DNA from: Octopus sinensis
Lineage: Eukaryota
Direction: 5' to 3'
DNA: 21,767 nucleotides
Assembly (NCBI RefSeq): GCF_006345805.1
Contig: NW_021823655.1
Span: 1-21,767 of the forward strand
In this document: positions 341-21,684 of the stretch, piece by piece
Position numbering within the stretch: the first letter of the stretch is position 1
Layout of the letters: each line of letters opens with the position of its first letter
Position numbers and translations under genes: made by a program
The notes under the pieces: model-generated
Database searches by the model: none
Seen by the model: the letters and a program-made list of their open reading frames with translations, nothing else
Told to the model about the DNA's origin: nothing

Positions 341-838
341 TTAATGAGAAATGTGATTCCTCATTTCTTTGGAGAGTTGGTTAATGTCTGGGTCGTAAGT
401 CGTTAATTTTAATATGAGGTTAGATTCGACCTCCAAATATTAAATTAATCTTCGACCTCCGAATCTTCAAAATTTAGATTCCAAATTCGAATCTGTAATT
501 TTGTTCCTTAATTTCGATTTTATATAATTCATATGAGAAAAACTTTGTTCACACATATAAGTGGACCCGAATATTGTCAAAATTCCGTATGCAAATTTTT
601 TTAATTCATAATAAGAATCTGGAAGATAATTCCAAGTTTCGAGAATCACATCTTCAAGTTTCTTTTGTATAACATTAATATCATTTTTAATTTTACCAGA
701 CAATGTTTCTGTTTCAAGTAATTCTGAAAGGCGAATAAATTTTGATGCCCATAATTCCTTACATGTCAAGTCCAATAGCTGAATTTCGAACTCAACTGCG
801 TTGATTTCAAATGGCAATAAATTTAAATTGCTGACTTT
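341..838 (-). pseudogene. hAT transposase C-terminal remnant (GTF2IRD2/EPM2AIP1-like, hATC dimerisation region)
   Basis: Translates as ...LKKFAYGILTIFGSTYMCEQSFSHMNYIKSKLRNKITDSNLES. After a small insertion it continues NLILKLTTYDPDINQLSKEMRNHISH*. The FGSTYxCEQxFS motif is typical of this hAT group. Confidence 0.85.
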
Positions 839-839
839 A

Positions 840-980
840 GCACGTAGAGGGTTTATAACGAACGATAGTGTTGTCGAGGGAGCGAGGGAGGTCTTCCAAA
901 AATAGGTTGAAGAGGGCCGGGGATAAGGGGGATCCCTGAGGTACTCCGAGGTATTGCTAGGCATATATCGATGTACCACA
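840..980 (-). pseudogene. Non-LTR retrotransposon reverse-transcriptase fragment embedded in the hAT
   Basis: GC-rich block. A frame not in the ORF track reads GVPQGSPLSPALFNLFLEDLP from 947 downward, matching the conserved QG-x-x-LSP RT motif. Confidence 0.85.
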
Positions 981-2617: not shown

Positions 2618-4079
2618 ATGCCAAGAACTGCAAAAACAATGTATTTTAAGGCAAAAAAAATTGTTATTGAATATCCGCTGGAGTTTTTATTACGAGAGAA
2701 TGGCGAGTTGCAATGTCAACTTTGCTTATGCACAGTCAGGTGTGAGAAAAAGCATTTTGTGAATTCTCACCGAGAATCGAAGAAGCACTCAAATTTATTA
2801 AGTTTTTACAAATTAATATAATTTTTAGAGAATAATTTCTATCAGCCTTGTTTGGACGAGTTACCCAATGATGACTGGTCAATGCAAGTCACTAAAGCAT
2901 TTATTCAATGCGATATACCCTTGCATAAATTGACTATGCCTCCTCTAAAGAATTTATTCAAGAATACTTCTTTGCCTCTTCCTTCCCAATACAAAGCAAG
3001 AATGTGCGTTAAACAATTGAAAACTGAATATATTGTATTATTTCAAGAAAAGTTTAGGTTTATGAATATATAATTTTTTAGAAATCAACTTGTATTCGCC
3101 ATAAGTGACGAGGTCACTATTCGTAGTCAAAAATTTGTTGCAGTTTTAATGGGGATACTTAAAAATCCCGATAAAACTTATTTGATTTCTTTCGTAAAAA
3201 TTGATAAAACTTCTACCAAAGAAACAATTATTCAAATTGTTGACGATACGATTAAATGCGTTTTAATTGAAAGACAAAATTTCCTTCTCCTAATAACAGA
3301 TTCCGCTAAATATATGCTAGCAGGTTTTAATTTAACATATAATTATAGCTGGAAAAGTTCTTAAGCTTTTATATCCAAGGTTATTTCACGTAACTTGTGT
3401 TGCTCATCTGATGCATAATTGTTCAATGAAAATCAGGACTATTTATCCTGAAATTGATTCTCTTATTGCATCAATTCAAGCGGCAATAACAAAAAATAAC
3501 AAGAGAAAACGACTATTTAATGAAATTGGAATTCCACCTCATGTAGTTTTAACTAGATGGGGTACTTGGCTAACTGCTGCATTTTATTATGCAAAAAATT
3601 TAATACATGTGATAAACATTTTCAAAACAATTCCTGATGATGGAATCATTGTTCAGGCTGCAAAAAATAGCCTAAGAGATGAATCTCTAGTAAAAAGCTT
3701 AAGTTCTATTGTTAGAAATTATTCGACAATTCCAGGTAAAACTAGTTTAATAATAGCAGAATTATTGTGCAAATTTGAAAGTTCTCACTCCTCAATAGAG
3801 TTAGCTTACAATGAGCTAAAGAATTTAAAATTTGACGACGAATCAGATATAATTGAAAAATATTTGAATGAACGATTACAAAAAAATGATTTATGTCAAA
3901 TTATAAGAATGACAAATTCATCAATTTCTCCTGAAGAATATTGTATGCTTTTAAAGTGTCAGCCTTCATCCTCTTCCATAGAACGATGCTTCTCTCAAAT
4001 TAAAAACTTTATGAGGGATAACAGAAATTTTAATATTGAAAATATAGAGAATTATGTTATATGTTTGTATAATAAATGA
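2618..4079 (+). CDS. hAT transposase with CGGBP1-like N-terminal zinc finger; introns 2802-2828, 3058-3081, 3324-3348 and a candidate at 3736-3756/3759; 461 aa (453-454 aa if the fourth intron is spliced)
   Basis: The spliced ORF is uninterrupted. It contains CQLC...H...H (zinc finger), AISDEVT (D), LITDSAKYMLAAGK (D), VTCVAH (CxxH), TRWGTW and SSIERCFS (E). 1462-76 = 1386 nt = 462 codons. Confidence 0.85.
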
Positions 4080-4348
4080 TTCTTAAGTTAAAATTTGTTA
4101 GGTTAAAATTTTTGTTTTATAGGTTAAAATTTGGTTATTTTTAGGTTAAAAAGTTAAAATTTTTAGGTTAAAAAATCGAAGTTTTTAGGTTAAAAAAAAA
4201 TTGCCCTAATAATAAATGATTCTTAAGTTAAAATTTGTTAGGTTAAAATTTTTGTTTTATAGGTTAAAATTTGGTTATTTTTAGGTTAAAAAGTTAAAAT
4301 TTTTAGGTTAAAAAATCGAAGTTTTTAGGTTAAAAAAAAATTGCCCTA
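4069..4348 (+). repeat. Exact 140-bp tandem duplication of the hAT right end, including the TIR
   Basis: 4069-4208 equals 4209-4348; both copies end in AAATTGCCCTA. Confidence 0.9.
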
Positions 4349-6410
4349 GTTATAATAAAAAAAGAAATGTCCATGGTTAAATTCAAAATCAGACCTTTTA
4401 AACTTTTCGATCCGAAAGATAGTTTTCGGAGGCAGGAAATGAATAAATTACTTCATTAAAATAAGTCACGATGAAAAGAAATGATTGTGCCTAATTAAAT
4501 ATTCGGATATTGTCTTTTGAAGAAGTAGATTATTCGGATATTGTTTTTATTTCACGACTGAAAATTTGGAGGTTTATATTGAAAAATAAAAATAATTCAA
4601 CAATATTTTTATTTTAAGCCATTTTTTGGATATTTTTTTCAAAAAGATATTAATACATTGTATTAAAAATTGAATACATTGCTAGATTGTAAATATCTCG
4701 GAACAAAAAATTTTGCAATTTGATTTGTATTTACAGAATATTTGAATATAAATCGTTATAATGAAAAAAGAAATGTCCATGATTAAATTCAAAATCAGAC
4801 CTATTGAACTTTTCGATCCGAAAGATAGTTTTCGGGTGGCAGGAAATGAATAAATTACTTCATTAAAATAAGTCACGATGAAAAGAAATGATTGTGCCTA
4901 ATAAAATATTCGGATATTGTCCTTTGAAGAAGTGGATAAAGGGAAATCAAATTGGATGTTCAAAAAGCCATAACTGGTGATCCTGAAAAATTTGTAACTT
5001 TCATACAACAAAAATATAAAAGACACTAATAATCATTAAGTAATGTTGTTAATGTAATACCACTCAAAAACATCAAAAATAAATTACCAAATTGTCTGAA
5101 AAATAAAATTGGGATGATCAAGTTTAAAAATGGGGATGATATGGATGCAATGAGAAACTTAGCATGCAACAGGGGAGGTTGGATAAGGATTATCAAAAAA
5201 ATCGTTTCAAGTGCCGCACGTGTGGAAATATAACTTTTATGTTTCTACGGCAGTTGCCGATAATAATAATAATAAATAAAATTATAAATAGATCAAATCA
5301 AGAATCGATTTGACAATTGGAATTTAAAAATTTGGTCATTAAAAATATTCATGGAAATGAATGAAAATAATAAATTTTCAAATTTAAAACAAAGGAATAA
5401 TACATATCACATTATGGTGAAAAAAACTCATAACCAACAATTTTTTAATTCATGGAAGGTTCTGAGCAAATATTAATATGCATCAAGTCCTTGAATCGAA
5501 ATAATAATAATTATGAATAAAAAATTAATATATGCAATAAAAGAACATACGAATCGCTGACGTAGTTAATTAAGCAATGTGAATTTATATAGTTTTAGGT
5601 TTACCATTTAATAGCCTAAACTCAATAATATAAATAAATATATAATTTAAGTTTTTTAAATGTGCGTGGAAGAATCATGCTGGTATAAACGAATGTAATA
5701 ATACTATTTTTATGGACTTGACTGTGAAAAGCCTCATTGAGTTGAGATGGTGAATGTGGCCAAAACTATGTCCGGAAGGATGCCCGTGGAAGACGACCTC
5801 TGATTGCTGAGAATTTCAATGTTCAATATTGAGATAATGTTTGAGGTCAAGGATAGCAGTTTGTGTCAATTACTACTACATCGTATTTAAACTCATTTGA
5901 AATATTCTAAAAAAATATCATCAAATAAAATGGTGCTAGCAAGCAATAAGGAAAAATAATAGTTGAGACGCGCATATATAGTAGTAACGTCGTAAAATTC
6001 TTACTTAAATGCACAACACTTTGTGGAATGGGTAAAGTGTATCCCAAAAAATAAAATGACGATTAACCCTTTTATAATAAATTAGCTTTCTGGAATTTCA
6101 ACAAAGTACGAAATGTTAATGATTTGATTACGAAATGTTAACTCAATTTTAGATTGCAGCAATGACAGTTTTCGATATAATGAACGGTTATTCCGAATAT
6201 TTGATTATATAATTCTTCCCCCAACATTTTATTAATTTCAGAGTCAATTGATACATTTCAAGATCAAATAACAATCGGAATACTCTGCATGGGCAAGACA
6301 CACTTCATTTTTATGTGAAAAACAGTTAATTTTAACTAATCGTATAACCAAAAAATGATTTTAGCCTGCAAAGCAGGCAAGAAAAATTATTCTAACGAAA
6401 ATGCGAATCC

Positions 6411-7490: not shown

Positions 7491-8525
7491 CTAGCTCGGC
7501 AGCTCGCTTCGCTCACCGCGACCTAGCTCCTGCGGAGGGCCTGTTTCATCAAACAACTATAAGTTTATGTAGATGTATAAAACTACCTGGTTTAATGTAA
7601 CCCTATTCTATCGCCTGTTGATAAACGATGTTTGTCGTCCGTCCTTCCTTGGCATATATGAATAAATTTTCTCTTCTGCCTACCCTCGAGCATCCCACAT
7701 ACAGCTGTCCATGTGAAAAGCACTCACTCTCTAAAAATAACCCAACTACCTTTAATGACTGTCCCTGGGCCTTGTTTATTATCATCGCAAAACTCATCCT
7801 CAAAGGAAATTGCAGCCTTTTAAATCTAAATGGTAATTCATCAGAAATTATCGGAATTCGTGGAATATAAACATCCTCACCTCTATACTTACCTGTTAAT
7901 ATCGTCGCCTCTATTACGTTAGCCATTAAATTTTGATAACTAACCTCGTTCCGTTGCATAATTTAGGTGGCGCAAGATTTCGTAATAAAACCACTGGAAC
8001 GCCTATCTTTAATTTTAAATGATGATTCGGCATTCCAGAGGATCTAAGGAGTTTAAAAATTCAAACGGATATTCGCAGGCTCTTTCATGGTCCATAATAA
8101 CGTCTACCGATTTATATATTCTTTCTTCTCCAGGGATTTTGATTAATAAATCTAAATTTATATTAAGTACCTCATCATTTAGCGGAGCTAATATAGCCCG
8201 TTGAGGAAGCCAGTCGAAATTCCTGTAGTGTTCTGATAGTTCAGAATATACTGAACTGAATAATTCTTCTGCTGTATTCACATATATACATAATTCTTCC
8301 GGTAGACTGATTTTCTGATCCTGTATATCTGAAGTAATTGCCCCATTTTCAATATCTAAAAGGATATTTGGAAATATGCTATTGACGCCTTGTAAATGTG
8401 CACGTACATTTACATCTAAGCTTACCTTTTTGACGTGTGTCCACAGGTATGACGATTTGAGGCAGGCATTCAATTCATCCGCAGGCGTCCCTCTTTGAAT
8501 AATTGGCAGAGTTTGTCTAAAATCA
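7491..8525 (-). mobile_element. Helitron 3' fragment (Pif1-type helicase C-terminus and CTAG 3' end)
   Basis: Translates as DFRQTLP (motif III) ... RAILAPLN ... LLRNLAPPKLCNGTRL ... RLQFPLRMSFAMIINKAQGQSL ... FSHGQLYVGCSRV, with two frameshifts. The minus strand ends GC-rich imperfect hairpin-CTAG|T at 7491. Confidence 0.92.
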
Positions 8526-8560
8526 ATGTCAAGAAAATAAAAAACTGGGCTCTAACCCCG

Positions 8561-8695
8561 TAGGCGGAAATGCGGTAGGCGGAAATGCGGTAGGCGGAAA
8601 TGCGGCAGGCGAAGATGCGGCAGGCGGAAATGCGGCAGGCGAAGATGCGGCAGGCAGAAATGCGGCAGGCGAAGATGCGGCAGGCAGAGATGCGA
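8561..8695. repeat. 15-bp GC-rich minisatellite, 9 units (YAGGCGRARATGCGG)
   Basis: Units start every 15 bp from 8561 to 8681. Central variants GGAAA/AGAAA and GAAGA alternate from unit 3 to unit 8. Confidence 0.95.
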
Positions 8696-8766
8696 CACAC
8701 AAAAAAGATTTAATTAATTACCTTATTAAGCTGACCGTTTTTTCTTCAGCTTCGTTTTCCTTCTTT

Positions 8767-9439: not shown

Positions 9440-10526
9440 AGGTTTTAATGGACCTCATCATGAATGTCGAGGACATTAACGTTGTTCATTTTAATCAAAT
9501 GCAGAAAATAATTTTTTGATTTTTTGGCGGGAAGGTTTCAAGGACCTCATCATGTAAGTCGAGGACATCGTAGTTGTTCATTTTAACCAAAATGCAGAAA
9601 ATTTTTTTTAATTTTTTTTGGGGGAAGGTTTTAAGGACCCCATCATGTAAGTCGAGGACTTCGTAGTTGTTCATTTTAACTAAACTGCAGAAAATTTTTT
9701 TTAATTTTTTTTGGGGGGGAAGGTTTTAAGGACCTCATCATGTAAGTCGAGGACATCGTAGTTGTTCATTTTAACCAAAATGCAGAAAATTTTTTTTAAT
9801 TTTGTTTGGGGGGGAAGGTTTTAAGGACCTCATCATGTAAGTCGAGGACATCGTAGTTGTTCATTTTAACCAAAATGCAGAAAATTTTTTTTAATTTTTT
9901 TGGGGGGAAGTTTTAAGGACCTCATCATGTAAGTCGAGGACATCGTAGTTGTTCATTTTAACCAAAATGCAGAAAATTTTTTTTAATTTTTTTGGGGGGG
10001 AAGGTTTTAAGGACCCCATCATGTAAGTCGAGGACATCGTAGTTGTTCATTTTAACCAAAATGCAGAAAATTTTTTTTAATTTTTTTTGGGGGGAAGGTT
10101 TTAAGGACCTCATCATGTAAGTCGAGGACATCGTAGTTGTTCATTTTAACCAAAATGCAGAAAATTTTTTTTTAATTTTTTTGGGGGGAAGGTTTTAAGG
10201 ATCTCATCATGTAAGTCGAGGACATCGTAGGGTGGAAGATTCTTGGAGGAGTTCATGATTTTAAGCTTGTTCCCCATTATTGGCTAATTATAAGGGGGAA
10301 AGATTTTGACAATTTATCTGTACTTTGCCAATTTGAAGTTGGTGTGCACACACAGACAGACAGACAGACAGACACACACCATACCATTTTTTTTTTTTTT
10401 TTTTTTTTGGTGCCTAATCAATTTATACAAACAAGACAAAAATTACAGATAGCTAAGTTAGTTAAAGGCCTCACGAGACACCCGACCAGCCGCGCGAATG
10501 GCGAAGACGATTTTATTATTAAGATT
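9440..10526 (-). repeat. Microsatellite plus ~94-bp satellite array element, copy B (DINE-1/Helentron-associated-like architecture)
   Basis: The GAGGAC anchor recurs at about 9469, 9561, 9654, 9749, 9844, 9936, 10030, 10124 and 10218 (9 units). (AGAC)5 lies at 10354-10373, followed by a long T run. The terminal 17-mer ATTTTATTATTAAGATT is shared with copy A. The family assignment is inferred from architecture only. Confidence 0.8.
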
Positions 10527-10552
10527 TCGGTACTTTTGTAAAGTACCATTTC

Positions 10553-11226
10553 GGTACTTTTGTCGAAGTGGTCGCAGTTTTTTTAGAAGATAATTAAAAT
10601 TAATTAATTTTTTTAGTGAAAAATAGATTATTTAATTTATAACCCTCTATCAATAATTTAAATGGTTATTAAAATTATTTAAAAATTTATTTAACCAATT
10701 TAGTCATTTTTAGTACGCGGCATCCAAATTCCAGGACTGTAGAAGGAATTTATGTCTTTTACAATCTGTGCAAAAGATTCCTTATAGTTCTGTATTTGTT
10801 TTCGCCACATAAATTCTGAAAAAATAACTAACTAAAAAAACCTGCGAAATAAGATCCCAGATGATGTCTTACAGCTCCTCTTTGAGCTTTATTCTTGCAT
10901 TTTGCACTTATACGTGATTTTGAAAGGATATCCACATTTTGCAGAAAATGCACTGCATCCTCCTTACTTATTGGGAGCTGTCGGAATTTGATGTTGCATA
11001 AGTCCACAACAGAATTTTCCATGTGACCTATAGTGCCAGTTTATATCAATATTAGGTACATGCTCGCCATAATATTAAAAAAATTAGAAAATAAATTAGT
11101 AAAAAATTTAATAATATTTTAAATTATTGATAGAGCGACTTAAATAAAATATAATATATTCCACCTCAAAAATTATTAGATTTTTAAAAGGCCTAAAAAA
11201 ACTGCGACCACTTCGACAAAAGTACC
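10553..11226 (-). mobile_element. Non-autonomous Merlin/IS1016-type element (674 bp, internal deletion)
   Basis: TIRs of about 30 bp, GGTACTTTTGTCGAAGTGGTCGCAGTTTTTTT and its reverse complement. 8-bp AAGATTTC at 10521-10528 and 11227-11234. The 3' arm is near-identical to 19063-19418. It retains the transposase N-terminus (MENSVVDL...SKSRI) fused to the C-terminus. Confidence 0.9.
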
Positions 11227-12730
11227 AAGATTTCTAACTGATTGGTTGTACCAAAAAAGTCGTGCACAACCCAAGTTAATGAATTAAAATTTTGTTTTAA
11301 TTATTTAATGAGAACCTTGGTTTTTATGGATTTAAAGTTTCTGATTGCAGTGGTTTATGAACTTTCTTCTCGATAAAACCCATGCTTCTCGAGCAAGTTA
11401 AGATAGAGATGATCACGAAAATATTATGTAAATTAAGGAATTGTTAAGAATATTATATAATTAAATAAATATTGTAAGTTCATGTTTCCGCAAATTTTTT
11501 GCTCGGCTCCCAAATGAGTAAATTTGAGAAGTTTTACTGTATATTTTATATGAATTCATATTAGGTTTTTTCTAACATTTTGGTTTTAGTTTTGACTGAA
11601 CTTTATTGTGGCGATCTGATTCAAATTGGGCTAATTACTACTAAGACCTATCATCTCAACATGTTGCTATAAATAATTACCGTCAGCTTTATCTACGGAA
11701 TTTTTTTGCGACTAGAACATAAATATAATCGTTTGTTGATGCTTACAGGTTTTTAAAAAAATGCAACATCTCTGAAGAAAGAAGGCCAAATATTATTCAT
11801 ACAATAATATTTAATTTTAATTCCTTCGTGCTGTTGCAATAAAAATCTAGAAAAGTGTTTCAATAGTACTTAACACTGAAGAACATATTGTTATATAAAA
11901 ATCAAACGACACTAAAACAAAACCTACGAATTTATAAAAATAAATAAAACTTTTTTGGCATAGATCAGGTTTTTGAGTTAATTTTTCTTGTTGTACTTGT
12001 AGTGGTGTTTACAGTGGTGGTTATATTTGAACAAATTTTTCTAAATTAACCATAGACTGTAGCAATGAACATACAACTACACAGTTAGCTAGATATTTTA
12101 CAAAAAAGAATTATAAATTTCATTTAATCTTAATCAGAGATTCGCTATAAATATTAAGATATTCTAACTGCGAAATGTGTTAAAGTTGCAATTAACAAAA
12201 TAAATTATTCTTTTAAATCAGTTCAAAAATTAAGCGAGCTTAAGAGCGAAATATCAAATTTTTCGAATTTATGTTAAATTATTTATTTTACTAGGAGCTT
12301 GTATCTGATGAATTTTTATTTCATAAGATGTGATTTCTTTATTCTTGCACTACCTAAAGAGAATATGACTTTAAACGAGCTTATAGACTACTAATCATGT
12401 AACCCATGTCCAAAATACTCTAATAAATTTAAAAACTCACTCATTGAATTATGTGAAACTCGTAATCCTCTTTAGGAACCGACCAAAAAATTCTGGCCCG
12501 AAAACTCTATTTATAGTAATTCTAAAATATTTTTAAGGTTTCGAAAACAGTATGGATTCTACAACATATCACCTGGTACTAAGAGAGACGAAAGTCAAAG
12601 ACCCTCACATGATTATGGATTAGCATAAAATAAGTACACAGCTAGCTTGCAACAATTTACGTGTAAAAATGAAAAACAAAAATCCAATGAAAGAAATCAA
12701 AAATTATAAATAGAAACCGAAATGAAAAAT

Positions 12731-14803
<2,073 letters not shown>

Positions 14804-16699
14804 TGTAGTTTATTATTTATAAATACTGTATTAATATCTGCTAGTTTTATATTAATAAAAATAATAATAAAGTAAAGTAAAATCAAATTTACTGATCATA
14901 AATCATTCATTTACTTTTCTGTTATAACAACTGCCCTCTCAAGTGCACGGCTTATTTTTGTCTATCACTCAGTCTCGTTCTTTGATTAGTCAGCTTATAC
15001 ACGTTTTCTAGTTGATTCGATGCACACATCAAAGTCTCTTTCATTTTTTTATAAAATCACCTCAAATCAGTTCTCCTTGATTTACGGAATCTGTTTTACT
15101 GAACTTCGTCTTTAAATGGGTCTAATACCCAACGAACCAATATTTAGCTCATTTATTAATATTTGACATTGCCTTATATTTGTTTCTTGTCTACGGTTGA
15201 AACAGTAGCTTTTTTGATTTAGCAAGACTATTTTGGAGTTCACTTTTCCAATTTGACTTTGTACGTTGGGGGGACTGATTGAGGTGCTGGCAAGCTTTCT
15301 AAATCGGTCAAATTGATTTAAAGCATGTTTTCAAAGAAAAAGTTTAGAGTTCGTGTTGAAAGTTATATTTCATTTAAAGTAGTTTGAGAGCTCTCAACAA
15401 ATCACACTTCAAAAAGATTCACTATCTCTTCTGTTGTTCACATTATATCTGGAATCTACTCTACTGAACAACAACAAAGACTACAATGATATAACTATGT
15501 AGATTGCATACGGTGACTAGTGGATTTTGTTTCAAATGGGAAGAAAACGCTTCAACTGCTTTTCAAAGTAATGGCACCCGTCAAAATGGTTTTGCATAAT
15601 GAAAATCTAAAAATATTAAGTTGACTGCGAATTGACTCGCAAAAAAATTGATAGAGGAAAACTAAAAGACCAAGAAACTTGGATTTTCCCTAAAAAATTT
15701 AAAGATATCAGAAATATGAAGTTCATGTCTGCTGCCAAAATGGAAAAACTGATAAAGGATTCGATAGGCCGACATCCCTTCAGGTTTCTGCTCCAAATAA
15801 GAATTTATAAAACATTTATGAAACCCGTTAAAAATTCTAGCACCTGGGAAGTCTATTTTCCAACTTTTAAAGTATTTAATCGACAGACCCTTAGATTCAA
15901 GTGATCACGGAGTCGCACTGGAATCTTTTTGAGTATATCTAAAGATTGAACCTAAGCACATTAGCAAATACAGCGAAAAATCACTGAGAGACGACAAGAT
16001 CTCAGAAGTCAACGTTCGACCATATAAAAATTAGATTTTGTGTTTTCCTTTCTGGTTTGGACAATTTTATTTTTTCCACGGCCTAACGAGTTTTTAAAAC
16101 AAACAAAAAATCATCAAAGTGTATAGCGAAGTTAAAAGAATGTTATCGAAAATTATTTCAAACAAGTTTCAAGCCATCCTGATTATATATCTATTCGTGC
16201 GATCAAATTATTTTTTGCAAACAACATCCTACGTACTCACTCGAAGGTTCTATCGTTCCAAGCGTTCTTTCCACAGAAATTGCGGCTAAACCTCACTCAA
16301 GGACACTGTTGCCACAACAATGGACTAGAAACCTACCTTCAAATATGGTCTGAATAAAACTCTGAACTGTCCAAACTGTGGCTTACTCAATCTAGCTTCA
16401 TGATTATTTTCATAAGCTTTTCGTTAACTTAACCATATGTTATTTATGGTATATGTAAATATTTGTTCTATGACAACGATAAAAAGAAATTTTAAAATTA
16501 GCAAGATTTGATATTTCAAGTGCATTTCATTTCTGAACAAGAAATAATGTTCCAAAAAATCGATTTGTTTAAACTAAAAATTCTTACTGTCTAATATGGA
16601 ATTAGCTAATCATAATGAAATCAGAATAGGTATCTCATCCAGAACAAAGCAGGTTTTAGTCCTCCTTCAGAAAAAACAAAATCCTTTCAAAATCACGTA

Positions 16700-18330
16700 C
16701 AGTGGGGCAAAAAAGTCATGGCACCTTTGCAAATTTTGACTAAATTTAACAATTCTTTGCAAAAAAAAATTAAATACATTACTTTAAAAAATAAATTAGT
16801 AATATAGAACTTTTTAGATAAATTATTAAAAAAACTATTAAAGGAAATTATTAATAGTGCACTAATTAACGATTTATTTTTAAAAGTCAATTTTTTGAGG
16901 GAAAAAAGTAATGGCACGAAATCCAATTAATATTTAGTTGCATTCCCTTTTGCTAGCAGAACTGCCTCCAATCGTTTTTTGTAAGAAAAAATTAGTTTTT
17001 ACATTCTACTTTAGAAATATTTTCCATTCTTCGTAGCAAATTGTTTTTAATTCCTGGATATTTTTGGTTTTCTTAAGCCAACTTTTATTTTGAATATTTT
17101 CCATAAGTTTTCGATGGGATTCAGGTCTGGCGATTGACTTGGCCATTCCAAAACATTTATTTTGTTTTTTTCTAACCATTTAACGGTACTTTGACTTGTG
17201 CTTAGGATCGTTGTCATGCTGGAATGTCCAATGTTGTGTCAAATTTAAGTTCGCGACCGAAGGTAAAAGACATTTTTCCAAAATTTCGCAATATTTAAAA
17301 GAATTCATCATTCCATCAATTACAAATAGTTCACCAACACCTGTTGATGAAAAACAACCCCACAACATGATACTACCTCCCCCGTGCTTTACGGTAGGTA
17401 TGGTGCATTTTGGGATATACGCCTGATTTGATTTGCGCCAAATTGAAAGCGTGTAGTTCAGTCCAAAAAGTTGTATTTTTGATTCGTCCGACCACAAAAT
17501 ATTGTTTATGAATTCATTTTCTTTGTTCAAAAGATTTTTTGCATATTGGATTCGCGCTGAAAGGTGTATTTTCTTTAATAACGGAACTCGACGGGGCCTT
17601 CGCTTATTGATACCTTCTTTGCGTAGTGTAGAAGTGATTGTACGAAGGGACACTGACGTTCCTGTGATTTTTAAATTATCGGCCAATTCTTTTCGAGTTA
17701 TTTTTGGGTTTGAAGTAACTAATCTTTTCATTAATGAAGAAGAACGCAGAGATATCTTTTTTGGAGCACCCGATCTTGGTTTATTAATAACAGTTCCGCG
17801 TTGCTTCCATCGAGTAATAATATTTCGAACAGTACTTTTTGGTAATATCAACAATTTAGAAATCTCTCCATAACTTTTACCGTTTTGGTGGGCAGTTACA
17901 ACTCGTTGTTTTAGGTCCAAAGAATGCTCTTTTCTCATCGACGAGATAATTTTAATAAAAGGCGCGAAAAATAAAGTATTTTATACTAATCGGAATCTAC
18001 TAATCAATTATATTAATAGAACTAAGAATCAATTATTTCAAAGAAAAAACAAGGCACAAAAGATAATCATTTGTATCTTATTGTCAAAAAAATCCATATT
18101 TTTTGATAGTGTCATCACTTTTTTACACATCAAATTTGACGTTTTTCTAAATATGAAGAAAAACAATTATATTTATTTGAAATTCATGAATATAATTAGC
18201 ACGAAATGGGTTCAAAAGAATGCAAGATTTTATTGTATAGCATGATAAACTAAATCGAAAAAGTTATCATTGTAAAAATATATTGAATTAAAAAAAATGA
18301 TAGGTGTGCCATGACTTATTTGCCCCACTG
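16700..18330 (-). mobile_element. Full-length Tc1-family (DD34E) transposon, 1631 bp, inserted in a Merlin transposase gene
   Basis: 25-bp TIRs CAGTGGGGCAAA(A/T)AAGTCATGGCAC with 1 mismatch. TA duplicated at 16698-16699 and 18331-18332. Confidence 0.95.
16927..17938 (-). pseudogene. Tc1 transposase with four apparent 1-bp frameshifts in its last third
   Basis: Paired-like HTH N-terminus, then [26 protein letters not shown], and after a frameshift [15 protein letters not shown]...KGNATKY*. Confidence 0.9.
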
Positions 18331-19418
18331 TATATGTCCGAAGGGACATCAGATGGAATTAGTCTTGGGACCGAAGCTCAATTGGAAATGCTCAAGAGTT
18401 GGTTGTAGAGTCCAATGTTCTATTAAAAAAGGTATAATTTCTCTCAAATAATCTAGATACCTGGTTAGAGAATTGTAGATTGCCATTTGAGGATGTCATC
18501 GCCTACATATACTTATGGAGTTACGATAGGCATACCTTCAAATGGCTTCATCACGAATACAATTGGGGTGAACATACATATGTCGATTGGGCTATGTTTT
18601 TACGTGAAGTCTGTGTGGACGCACTTGTTAAAAGATCTGACGGCAAAATTGGTATTATTAATGTTTATTTCAGGTGGTCCTGGTATGATTGTGGAGGTAG
18701 ACGAGAGTATGTTTTCCAAACGGAAAAACAACTCTGGAAGAGTTTTACCAAAACAGTGGGTCTTCGGTGGTATTTGTCGAGCCACCAAACAGTGTTTTCT
18801 GCAACCAGTCGCGGATAGGAGCAGAGAAACACTGCTCAGTCTAGTAATTCGATATGTCGAGGTGGGAAGCATTATTTATAGTGACTGCTGGAAAGGTTAG
18901 CATTATTTGATTAACATTTAGGGTATTCAACTGATCAATTGGTTGAAAACGGCTACACACACGAAACCGTTAACCATAAGTAAGGAAATATAATATATTC
19001 AGAAAATTCTTTGTGGATCCAACGACGGGAGTGCACACCCAGACAGTAGAACGAATGTGGGGAAGTGCAAAATGCAAGAATATAAAGCTCAAAGAGGAGC
19101 TGTAAGACATCATCTGGGATCTTATTTCGCAGGTTTTTTTAGTTAGTTATTTTTTCAGAATTTATGTGGCGAAAACAAATACAGAACTATAAGGAATCTT
19201 TTGCACAGATTGTAAAGACATAAATTCCTTCTACAGTCCTGGAATTTGGATGCCGCGTACTAAAATGACTAAATTGGTTAAATAAATTTTTAAAATATTT
19301 TAATAACCATTTAAATTATTGATAGAGGGTTATAAATTAAATAATCTATTTTTCACTAAAAAAATTAATTAATTTTAATTATCTTCTAAAAAAACTGCGA
19401 CCACTTCGACAAAAGTAC
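18331..19418 (+). mobile_element. Merlin/IS1016-type element, 3' part (5' arm reduced to 19 bp at 16681-16699, left of the Tc1)
   Basis: The right TIR AAAAAAACTGCGACCACTTCGACAAAAGTAC ends at 19418 and lacks the terminal C. ATCCTTTCAAAATCACGTA at 16681-16699 matches the N-terminal coding sequence of the 10553-11226 copy. Confidence 0.88.
18332..19272 (+). pseudogene. Merlin (DDE_Tnp_IS1595-like) transposase with five tiny introns: 18432-18456, 18652-18673, 18896-18921, 18980-19002, 19133-19158
   Basis: Spliced product: ICPKGH...WKCSRVGC...SIKKDTW...KIGGPGMIVEVDES...WVFGGICR...IIYSDCWKGY...HETVNHKKFFVDPTTGVHTQTVERMW...YFAEFMWR. It is inactivated by the Tc1 insertion, by a 2-nt insertion near 19081 and by 1-nt deletions near the 3' end. 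Confidence 0.88.
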
Positions 19419-19727
19419 AAATTATTTTTTAATCAAAAACGTTTGTTTTGAATAAAATACAGTTACAGTGAAGTTTTACTTTCCATTTAATAGGATTTTA
19501 AATAAAGTACTGGAAAAATTGATTAAACACCTTTCGAATAACTTTCAAAGTTTTAACATGTCACAGGCACTACCGCTGCGGGTTACTGAATGCTCGAATT
19601 TAACATTTTAAGCATTTTTTTATAAAAATTAAACCTAAATTTTCTTAGTTATTATATTAAATTAAGAAATATATAATTTCAATATTTGTCAATATGAAGG
19701 ACGAATCTGTTGAATTTAAGAAATTAT

Positions 19728-21005
19728 TCGGTCCTTTCACCTGCCTTATTTAACTTACATCTGTCAAATATCCCGACGAACATAATACTCTACTCTCTCC
19801 TACGCTGATGACTTAATTTTTGCCTCCCGCCACCAAAACATAATCACCGCTTCTGGATTTCTGCAGGAACACATGAACACTCTTTCGTCCTGGCTGAAAT
19901 GCAATCTTCTTCAACCTTCTCCTTCCAAATCATCTGTTACGCTATTCACAACTGACCGCCGTCAGTTCAACTTAGAGCCTAAAACTATTCCTAGACAACA
20001 CTCCACTCCCAGTTGAAAAATCCCCCAAAATCTTGGGTCTGATATTTGATTGCTGTTTGTCCTTCTCGAAACATGTTTCATATATCTGTGGAAAATCCCA
20101 GAAAAAACTCAATGTGCTCCGAGCTATTGCGGGGACTTCATTTGGCAGGATAAGGAAAGTCTAACAACTGTATACAGTGGGCGCAAAAAAAATCCGGTTT
20201 TCTTATTTTTCGAATTTTTCAATATAAATTTTATATTATTTTTTTTTAATTTAGTATCATTTTGAAATGTAAATCGAGTATGTTTTTAATTTTGTACAAG
20301 CAGTTTATTAGAACAACTATGAACTACGCCATCCCTGCTTGGGGTTCTGCTTATCTATTACAAACCTTGAAAAACTTCAGAGAACTCAAAACTCAGCATT
20401 ACGAATTATTACCGGCTGTCTAAAAACGACACCTACCGACCACCTACATTGGAATCGAAAATCCTTCAATCAGTGACCATTTTGAAATGCTCGGGCTGCA
20501 ATTTCTTGACAAATGCCGAACCCTAAATCACCCTGGCTACTTCCTCTGGCACTCCACTAACAACAGGAGAATAGTTCCGACCCTCGCGGACAAAGTCCGC
20601 AAGCTTATACGATCCCCTCCGGACATTAACCAGAAGGGGATTCACGACCTGGTGGCTACGAGGGCAATCAGATGTCTTGGAATAAACAAGCTTCTGGGAC
20701 GCCTTCCGCCGCCAATTAATAAGATCGAATCCTCCCTCTCAAGAGAAGCCCGAGTGAACTTGGCTCGCCTCCGCTGTGGCCACCATACTGGCCTACACGA
20801 TTATCGCATAAAAATCGGTCTTGGAGAAATAACCCCTTCCTATTCCCTCAACGACCTTTTCTCCTGTCCAGGCCCGCCTTCTACTTCCTCGGAACACCGG
20901 ATCACGATCGGGGATCTTTGGGAGCGTCCGACATTGGCCCTAACGTTCTTGTTAGCCACCGGCTTCCTTCAATTGAAGGGGCCGGGGGTAAATAAATAAA
21001 TAAAA
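19728..21005 (+). mobile_element. 5'-truncated, degenerate non-LTR retrotransposon (RT C-terminal half; I-group-like by motif recall)
   Basis: SVLSPALFNL...SYADDL...SPKILGLIFD...LRAIAGTSFG...MNYAIPAW...QNSALRIITGC...LARLRCGHH, with several frameshifts and a (TAAA)n tail at about 20988-21005. Confidence 0.9.
20175..20294. mobile_element. 120-bp insertion in the LINE, flanked by duplicated TA, with one Tc1-like end
   Basis: TA at 20173-20174 and 20295-20296. Removing the insert and one TA restores ACT GTA TAC AAG CAG (TVYKQ). The insert starts CAGTGGGCGCAAAAAA but has no matching right TIR. Confidence 0.7.
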
Positions 21006-21061: not shown

Positions 21062-21684
21062 CAGGGCTGGCCAACCCAAGGCCCGCGGGCCGCATGCGGC
21101 CCGCGATGGAGTTTGGTGCGGCCCGCGAGAGAATTTTGTATGTAGTTAACCTATAAATACATTCAAGATAAATTTTTCTTAAGTTTAATAAATAAAGATA
21201 AATTTTATAAGTTTAATAAATTTTAAAGTTTATCTATTTTTGTAGCTGTTATCAATATGAAGAAAAGGAAAATTTTTGAAGAAAACAGGCAATTCAGCAA
21301 TCATTGGGAGAAGATTACTTTTTTATAATGCATAATTCCAAGCCAACATGTTTAATTTGCAAGGAGAAAGTATCGGTGGTGAAAGAGTACAATGTAAGAA
21401 GACATTATGAAACAAAGCATTCCGAATACGCGAAATTTAGTAAGGAATTGAAAACAAGGAAACTGGATTCGCTTAAATCTGAATTGAGAAATCAGCAAAG
21501 ACTATTAAATTCATCGATACACTTTTCTTCTGATACTGTTAAAGCAAGCTACTCTGTTGCAATGATAATTTCAAAGAGAATGAAATCATTTTCGGATGGA
21601 GAATTCGTAAAAGAGTGTTTGGATGCTGTCGTGAAAGACATTTTGCCAGATAAAACTAAAAACTTTGCAGACGGAAATAATTGA
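21062..21684 (+). mobile_element. hAT transposon 5' end (SPIN/GTF2IRD2-type zinc-finger transposase N-terminus), frameshifted and apparently truncated
   Basis: The left terminus is CAGGGCTGGCCAAC with GGCCCGCG subterminal repeats. ATG at 21257 gives MKKRKIFEENRQFSNHW, then a frameshift, then DYFF...CLICKEKVSVVKEYNVRRHYETKH...KSFSDGEFVKECL. Confidence 0.88.

Follow-up and report, generated by a model that had tools for sequence, protein, structure and literature searches.

A defective Merlin transposon whose transposase gene appears to be split by five host-type ultra-short introns

The stretch of DNA analysed here, which we call the window (21,767 nucleotides of contig NW_021823655.1 in an Octopus sinensis assembly), is best read as containing a defective copy of a Merlin transposon from the genome of an animal with tiny introns, its transposase gene being split by five introns that the host would remove by splicing. 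We put the probability of this reading at about 85%. Merlin elements are IS1595/IS1016-related cut-and-paste DNA transposons, and the host of this one, in all likelihood a dicyemid that parasitises octopus, would routinely splice out introns some 20-30 nt long. Splicing of the pre-mRNA at all five introns is predicted to give a transposase of about 309 aa with an N-terminal CHCC zinc ribbon and a DDE domain, and retention of any single intron would shift the reading frame and truncate the transposase. The introns travel with the element during transposition as DNA, as intron 5 has done in a 698-bp derivative, and were most probably acquired after the Merlin lineage had settled in a tiny-intron genome.

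Results

Comparison of sequences confirms, as the original prediction held, that the gene at 18333-19272 is that of a Merlin/IS1595-type DDE transposase. The spliced model matches the Pfam family DDE_Tnp_IS1595 (PF12762) with E=1.5e-18, above the curated cut-off, and with the spliced product as query 93 Merlin-type proteins were matched at E<=1e-5, at about 50% identity over 97%. The best of these homologues, which are 287-303 aa long, have 48-51% identity at 97-99% query coverage (about 51% over 97% for proteins of 292 aa), and the matches that carry names come from nematodes, spiders, a planthopper and a shrimp. Eukaryotic Merlin transposases are about 270-330 aa long. In an alignment of 14 sequences the D of EVDES and the D of YSDCW are invariant and the E of AEFMWR is nearly so, while the C/H residues of the zinc ribbon fall in conserved columns. 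A composite of the two Merlin copies in the window forms an open protein of 309 aa, which matches DDE_Tnp_IS1595 with E=5e-19, again above the curated cut-off. No close copies of the element were found in the protein database, and among 5.8 billion proteins there was no match to a spliced Merlin-family protein from the source host.

Five GT..AG segments of 25, 22, 26, 23 and 26 nt had been proposed as introns of this gene, and all of them are present where they were placed (Table 1). None of the five lengths is divisible by 3, each segment shifts the frame, and removal rebuilds the five family motifs at the junctions exactly as they had been quoted, with no gap in most homologues. All five junctions fall within ungapped conserved blocks of the 14-sequence alignment. 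At the junction of intron 2 both the I and the G are invariant; intron 3 lies directly 3' of the second catalytic D of the transposase and intron 5 directly 5' of the codon for the catalytic E. The GC content of the five introns is 21%, as against 41% in the exons. Where a branch-point A would be sought, TAAT/TAAC-like runs are found 5-12 nt before the AG in each intron, which is uninformative in sequence that is 80% AT, and at position +3 T is commoner than in the published 'GTa', in what is a small sample. The window as a whole is AT-rich (GC of about 25-44%) and uses the standard genetic code. GT..AG candidates of tiny-intron size come about every 22 nt in the Merlin region, too densely for an ORF-maximising search with free choice among them to discriminate unless homology is used.

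Chance agreement at these junctions, which had been thought very unlikely, can be given a figure. In the 940 nt of the Merlin region, 43 of about 10,340 combinations of start and length (20-30 nt) are GT..AG segments, and with 1-4 equivalent placements allowed per junction the chance of finding GT..AG at all five deletions defined by homology is about 2e-10. By their boundaries, length and composition and by the restoration of homology, the comparison supports the view that the five segments are ultra-short spliceosomal introns of the host's own type, and we infer that the host spliceosome would remove them.

Table 1. Features of the window, with positions counted from its first letter. Junction counts refer to the homologues spanning the given junction, and gapless means no gap within 3 residues.
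Feature	Position	Strand	Details
Long Merlin copy, main part	18333..19419	+	six exon segments, five introns, 3' UTR, 3' terminal inverted repeat
Merlin intron 1	18432-18456	+	25 nt, GT..AG, phase 1, junction SIKK/DTW; gapless in 61/62 homologues
Merlin intron 2	18652-18673	+	22 nt, GT..AG, phase 1, junction KI/GGPG; gapless in 71/84 homologues
Merlin intron 3	18896-18921	+	26 nt, GT..AG, phase 1, junction DCWK/GY; gapless in 80/89 homologues
Merlin intron 4	18980-19002	+	23 nt, GT..AG, phase 2, junction VNHK/KFFVDP; gapless in 87/89 homologues
Merlin intron 5	19133-19158	+	26 nt, GT..AG, phase 1, junction YFA/EFMWR; gapless in 81/82 homologues
3' terminal inverted repeat, long Merlin copy	19386..19419	-	pattern match 19393-19414, 0 expected by chance
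Left remnant of long Merlin copy	16681..16699	+	19 nt coding ...SKSR; ends in TA, the Tc1 target
2-bp insertion AT, long Merlin copy	19080..19081	+	relative to short copy; frameshifts exon 5
Two 1-nt deletions in A runs, long Merlin copy	after 19213, after 19261	+	relative to short copy; exon 6
Nested Tc1-like element	16700..18330	-	splits long Merlin copy; TA duplications 16698-16699 and 18331-18332
Short non-autonomous Merlin copy	10529..11226	-	698 bp, internal deletion; perfect 34-bp TIRs GGTACTTTTGTCGAAGTGGTCGCAGTTTTTTTAG
Target-site duplication of short copy	10521..10528	.	8 bp, AAGATTTC; partner 11227-11234
hAT-type gene	2618..4079	+	tiny introns 2802-2828 (27 nt), 3058-3081 (24 nt), 3324-3348 (25 nt)
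Probable fourth hAT intron	3736-3759	+	24 nt, in-frame GT..AG; 8-aa alignment surplus exactly there
Host lysyl-tRNA synthetase (LysRS) gene	12798..14550	-	reference for host intron style; at least 7 GT..AG introns, 25-31 nt
LysRS introns, examples	14422-14447, 14187-14217, 13689-13718, 13501-13525, 13301-13326, 13188-13214, 13072-13101	-	

The second copy of the element in the window is a short derivative with perfect terminal inverted repeats (TIRs); weaker inverted similarity runs on to about 140 nt, and the left end of the copy carries an extra terminal duplication of 24 bp (10529-10552). Merlin elements reportedly have a target-site duplication (TSD) of 8-9 bp. The 8-bp TSD of the short copy occurs three times in the window, two of these occurrences being the ones that flank the copy. 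Reading on the minus strand, the short copy has an ATG at 11022 and the N-terminal 38 codons to about 10909, and passes over the deletion joint into the tail of exon 5, intron 5 (10816-10841) and exon 6, with a stop at 10700-10702. The N-terminus that had been assigned to this copy is real (10909-11022). The two copies are 98.3% identical over 358 aligned positions, and a block of 135 nt that includes intron 5 is 100% identical between them; the comparison is of two copies (n=2), and intron 5 is the only intron seen in both. A search of metagenome contigs with the 22-nt core of the TIR gave no matches.

Taken together, the TIRs, the TSD, the internal-deletion derivative and the two near-identical copies show a DNA transposon family that was mobile recently and takes its introns along. 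Since the short copy keeps intron 5 unchanged, the element moved as DNA together with its introns, which bears out both the retention of intron 5 in the short copy and the DNA-mediated transposition that had been read from it.

The long copy is dead. It is truncated at its 5' end, split by a Tc1-like element and disrupted by three frameshifting indels. Once the AT insertion is taken out, GSAKCKNKAQRGAVRHH lines up without gaps against GSAKWRNKRHRGTARHH, the consensus of the family, and the first of the two 1-nt deletions leads to a premature stop in exon 6, upstream of the family stop codon at 19270-19272. Even after removal of the five introns the frame of the long copy still breaks in exon 5, and the spliced model is not a read-through of this copy. 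The remnant to the left of the Tc1 matches the short copy at 100%, just before the deletion breakpoint of the latter, and when the flanks are rejoined (16699 to 18333 onward) they read ...SKSRICPKGHQ..., as in Merlin homologues. Merlin sequence does not continue upstream of 16681, and the 5' inverted repeat of the long copy is found nowhere in the window. At its 3' end the long copy has the TIR sequence of the short copy, and an arm of 157 nt there is 99% complementary to 10554-10710. No intact autonomous Merlin copy is present in the window. The three indels, the end of the Tc1 just upstream of 18331 and the missing 5' end did not figure in the original prediction.

The nested Tc1-like element has inverted ends of about 25 nt, CAGTGGGGCAAA(A/T)AAGTCATGGCAC, and matches the Pfam families HTH_SB and HTH_Tnp_Tc3_2. 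The sequence MTYLPHC, which was considered as a start of the Merlin protein, belongs to the inverted end of this element and was rejected. The Tc1 open reading frame (ORF) is frameshifted near 17183-17238, and no tiny introns were found in the element, the changes of frame overlapping as frameshifts do. Its DNA shares 97.5% identity across 1290 nt with Octopus sinensis scaffold VCDQ01005863.1, with unrelated flanks. Over 58% of its length the ORF shows 99% identity to a protein of Octopus sinensis.

A hAT-type gene in the window also carries tiny introns, three or four of them, in line with the original prediction, which had counted it among the elements with host-style tiny introns. Its spliced ORF is intact, at 461 aa with three introns removed or 453 aa with the probable fourth removed as well, and contains Pfam DUF659; the last exon has 1878 homologues. 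Set against those of about 455-460 aa the spliced model shows no gap at junctions 2 and 3; junction 1 falls in a variable region. On the minus strand, a Helitron-like helicase fragment (7606-8551) has no tiny introns, its frame changes overlapping and being frameshifts. The Tc1, which has a nearly identical octopus copy, is free of introns; the Merlin and hAT elements, for which there are no close relatives outside, carry several each.

The LysRS gene shows what an intron of the host looks like. Against eukaryotic LysRS the protein reaches 69% identity in its best match, with no informative names among the matches, and none of seven ORFs of the window that were looked up exactly was present in the protein collection. 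The introns of the gene sit at junctions defined by homology, several of them being in frame but containing stops. At 22-26 nt the Merlin introns compare with 25-31 nt for those of LysRS and with published medians of 22-27 bp. In Dicyema sp. the median intron length is 27 bp (PMC6543705), in D. japonicum, with a genome of 49% repeats, the mean is 38 bp (PMC6736024), and in myxobolid myxozoans the medians are 22-27 bp (PMC13644364). O. sinensis is the octopus from which D. japonicum was collected (PMC6736024), and this, together with the near-identity of the nested Tc1 to an O. sinensis copy, points to a dicyemid parasite of octopus as the likely host, with a myxobolid as a possible alternative. 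A ciliate origin as the cause of the tiny introns was considered and rejected, the code being standard and TAA/TAG delimiting both the LysRS exons and the Tc1 ORF.

Discussion

How the Merlin gene came by its introns can be approached through its relatives. Five genes were checked for introns, of which four were clearly readable, and all four are single-exon: P0001 has 292 aa in 879 nt as a single uninterrupted ORF, and the genes of Nilaparvata lugens (P0012; 280 aa in 843 nt), Trichonephila clavata (P0029; 292 aa in 879 nt) and Palaemon carinicauda (P0073; 425 aa in 1278 nt) are likewise uninterrupted. The fifth, from Meloidogyne graminicola (P0025), spans 841 nt and encodes 242 aa; the stretch that is missing from this protein lies elsewhere than at the Merlin junctions. 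Partial Merlin matches at 55-60% identity are also unbroken across junctions 2-5. Because relatives in other animals have no introns at these positions, a gain of the introns in this lineage is suggested, and on such comparisons gain within the host lineage is probably the simplest reading. The suggestion of intron gain or long co-residence made in the original prediction is consistent with the four single-exon relatives and the intronless octopus-like Tc1.

It is less likely, in our estimate, that the introns were inherited from an intron-bearing Merlin ancestor, either vertically or with the element, and shrank along with the introns of the host. According to the account of Ogino 2010 given in PMC6543705, dicyemid introns are shortened introns at conserved positions, and the nearest Merlin relative is only about 51% identical, which leaves a long branch unsampled. 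Uninterrupted ORFs are moreover favoured in the protein database, and intron-bearing relatives may be missed in it. Against this must be set the finding that all four clearly readable relatives are single-exon, the unbroken matches across junctions 2-5 at 55-60% identity, and the different position of the stretch missing from P0025. Gain in the host lineage could be taken further, to the effect that DNA transposons resident in dicyemids acquire ultra-short introns de novo and densely, with five in the 0.9-kb Merlin, three or four in the hAT and none in the Tc1 shared with octopus; this we offer tentatively, as an idea that could be right but is more apt to be wrong.

As to the way in which introns might have been gained, the five Merlin segments are pure insertions relative to the related genes. 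No protein residues are missing, and therefore these introns were not made by conversion of coding sequence to intron. An introner-like source was looked for, as the original prediction had proposed, and did not emerge: compared in pairs, the five Merlin introns score on average the same as shuffled controls, and this holds also for all 15 introns of the window. Tandem duplication of an AGGT-containing exon segment was no better favoured, since matches between intron and exon ends were not above those in shuffles (p = 0.21-0.95 for the five introns). Old tandem duplications at intron ends would by now be erased.

Domestication, by which the gene with its introns would be a host gene of transposase origin and no longer part of a mobile element, is improbable. 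An exon-intron structure is typical of co-opted transposases, and the intron-bearing Tc1-like TLEWI genes of bivalves have been interpreted in this way (bioRxiv 10.1101/656579). A domesticated gene is nevertheless hard to reconcile with perfect 34-bp TIRs, an 8-bp TSD, a deletion derivative and two copies that are 98% identical at different sites, or with a long copy that is disrupted and not conserved.

Even less credible is the notion that the five segments are insertions which arose by decay in a dead pseudogene and would not be spliced. The long copy is demonstrably decayed, with its three indels, nested Tc1 and truncation, and in AT-rich DNA such as this GT..AG segments of 20-30 nt turn up often, 43 of them in 940 nt. 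Random insertion would scarcely produce GT..AG at the exact placement required by homology in five cases of five (about 2e-10), nor segments that are all 22-26 nt long with a GC content near 20%; furthermore, the true decay indels measure 1-2 nt and are not shared by the sister copy, in which intron 5 is present without any difference.

The shortest internal eliminated sequences of ciliates overlap the Merlin segments in size class, and circular contigs have been reported in a Dicyema assembly (PMC6543705), yet we consider the least probable explanation of all to be removal of the segments from DNA, by ciliate-like elimination or dicyemid DNA elimination, in place of splicing: their boundaries are GT..AG and not TA..TA, the TA-bounded alternative for intron 1 would be 21 nt and would not restore the frame, the standard genetic code is in use, and segments of the same type are found in the host LysRS, in lineages for which published transcriptomes support splicing (PMC13644364, PMC6736024).

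The preferred reading, in which five introns of a mobile element are spliced by its host, combines features that are familiar separately. Like other members of the Merlin superfamily (Feschotte 2004, as cited in PMC3673617 and PMC1636069), the element is compact and encodes a transposase of the DDE_Tnp_IS1595 type, about 300 aa long and bearing a zinc ribbon at the N-terminus; it has TIRs, an 8-bp TSD and internal-deletion derivatives, of which the Merlin of Schistosoma has many (PMC1636069). It differs in that its gene is split by five introns of 22-26 nt, where the four readable relatives are single-exon. The introns resemble the ultra-short introns of dicyemids and myxobolids in being GT..AG, of 20-30 nt and AT-rich, with reduced splice-site motifs, but those have been described in host genes (PMC6736024, PMC6543705, PMC13644364). 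In the literature that we searched, which took in genome papers on dicyemids and myxozoans, we found no description of introns in Merlin or hAT transposase genes of these animals. The finding is less of a surprise than the original prediction supposed, ultra-short introns being already the published norm for dicyemids and myxobolids, and introns being known from the transposase genes of other DNA transposons.

Spliceosomal introns interrupt the transposase genes of the P element and Ac. Introns in the transposase gene are known too from CACTA elements (PMC4158355), and GT..AG introns from the TLEWI Tc1-like elements of bivalves (bioRxiv 10.1101/656579). What these systems have in common with the Merlin family is that introns are the same among copies through transposition as DNA and that transposition depends on host splicing. 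The introns described here are, by contrast, an order of magnitude shorter, with five in 0.9 kb, and while TLEWI is without TIRs and looks domesticated, the Merlin family possesses TIRs and a TSD and has recently given rise to a deletion derivative. Introners (PMC9860276, PMC12130899) would account for many lineage-specific intron gains, but the 15 introns of the window resemble one another no more than shuffled sequences do, and 22-26 nt is too short for a transposable unit.

It is conceivable that the introns are of some use to the elements. They might make expression dependent on splicing, or might allow truncated, DNA-binding repressors to be formed through intron retention. Retention of intron 1 would leave only the N-terminal part with the zinc ribbon, a fragment that might, on the model of the P element, compete for the TIRs.

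Conclusions

Transposase introns in DNA transposons and ultra-short introns in dicyemids and myxobolids are both known already, and no new mechanism is involved. The dependence of a transposon on host splicing is likewise established, and the importance of the present case is in this respect moderate. There is a practical consequence for dicyemid and myxobolid genomes, in which annotation of genes and transposons based on ORFs will miss or fragment transposases unless introns of 20-30 nt are modelled. Merlin transposases being normally single-exon, the ancestral state can be set at zero introns, and the element offers a clean case for study of the origin of new introns, above all in those two lineages of animals in which introns approach the physical minimum of size. 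If de novo gain is true, transposon families arranged by their time of residence would form a dated series in which the creation of 20-30-nt introns, and its rate, could be followed.

The hAT-type gene and its surroundings

Besides the Merlin copies, tiny introns (GT..AG segments of about 20-30 nt) are present in the hAT-type gene and in the lysyl-tRNA synthetase gene. The hAT-type gene contains three of them, and a fourth is probable at 3736-3759, where the segment is in-frame and has no stop codon. Since the open reading frame is intact after splicing in silico (461 or 453 aa), it may be, on the sequence, that this gene is active or has been domesticated. No TIRs were found for it, and direct repeats lie on both sides of it, at 2213-2429 and 4549-4762. 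Two perfectly identical 140-nt tandem units (4069-4348) start within the last codons of the gene and extend past its stop; they are followed directly by a 406-nt repeat, the two copies of which (4349-4937) are 94-95% identical. Arrays of an approximately 94-nt satellite, at 1570-1827 and 9444-10230, enclose this gene together with the Helitron-like fragment and further repeats. The arrays are inverted relative to each other at a distance of about 8 kb and form arms of up to 159 nt with 90-95% complementarity.

Genes, transposon fragments and the octopus counterpart of the Tc1-like element (coordinates of the window, except for the last line)
Feature	Position	Strand	Description
hAT-related fragment	470-979	-	hAT C-terminal dimerisation domain, E=1.2e-4
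hAT-type gene	2618-4079	+	BED-like zinc finger, DUF659, hAT C-terminal region
PIF1/Helitron-like helicase C-terminal fragment	7606-8551	-	three overlapping frames (two frameshifts)
Host lysyl-tRNA synthetase gene, mapped part	12798-14550	-	at least 7 GT..AG introns, 25-31 nt
hAT-related fragment	21304-21681	+	N-terminal Spin-doc-type zinc finger, E=1.2e-10; extends toward window end
Octopus copy of Tc1-like element	locus L006, 9962-11248		nucleotide match

Other genes and transposon fragments

In the exon/intron model of the lysyl-tRNA synthetase gene a stretch of about 120 nt between 14086 and 13964 is unaccounted for, and could be a small exon or a longer intron. The helicase fragment has no tiny introns; it matches Pfam families weakly (PIF1, 0.0018; Herpes_Helicase, 0.0029), and immediately upstream of it lie about 12 copies of a 15-nt tandem repeat (AGGCGGAAATGCGGT-like; 8532-8711). 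Non-LTR reverse transcriptase-like pieces, with a YADD motif and conserved blocks downstream, were recognised by eye in several frames at 19786-21000 (+). Between ...TTVY and KQFIRTTMNY this reading is broken by some 95 nt of AT-rich sequence (~20195-20290). For the 170-aa ORF at 20487-20996, Pfam gave no match.

The short Merlin copy, an internal-deletion derivative, has an additional 24 bp (GGTACTTTTGTAAAGTACCATTTC, 10529-10552) at its left end, between the regular TIR and the target duplication. These 24 bp repeat TIR bases 1-11 together with the reverse complement of those bases; a terminal duplication or a repair footprint could account for them.

The Tc1-like element

The Tc1-like element which splits the long Merlin copy (16700-18330, -) has a counterpart on Octopus sinensis scaffold VCDQ01005863.1, with 97.5% identity over 1290 nt in nucleotide comparison, and its protein is 99% identical to LOC115228528 across 58% of the ORF. 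The remaining relatives, teleost and frog Tc1 elements, have about 50% identity. DNA flanking the element in the window and in octopus is unrelated. Judged from these sequences, the near-identical octopus copy would reflect either a recent horizontal transfer between the octopus host and its dicyemid parasite, or else the cross-contamination of one assembly.
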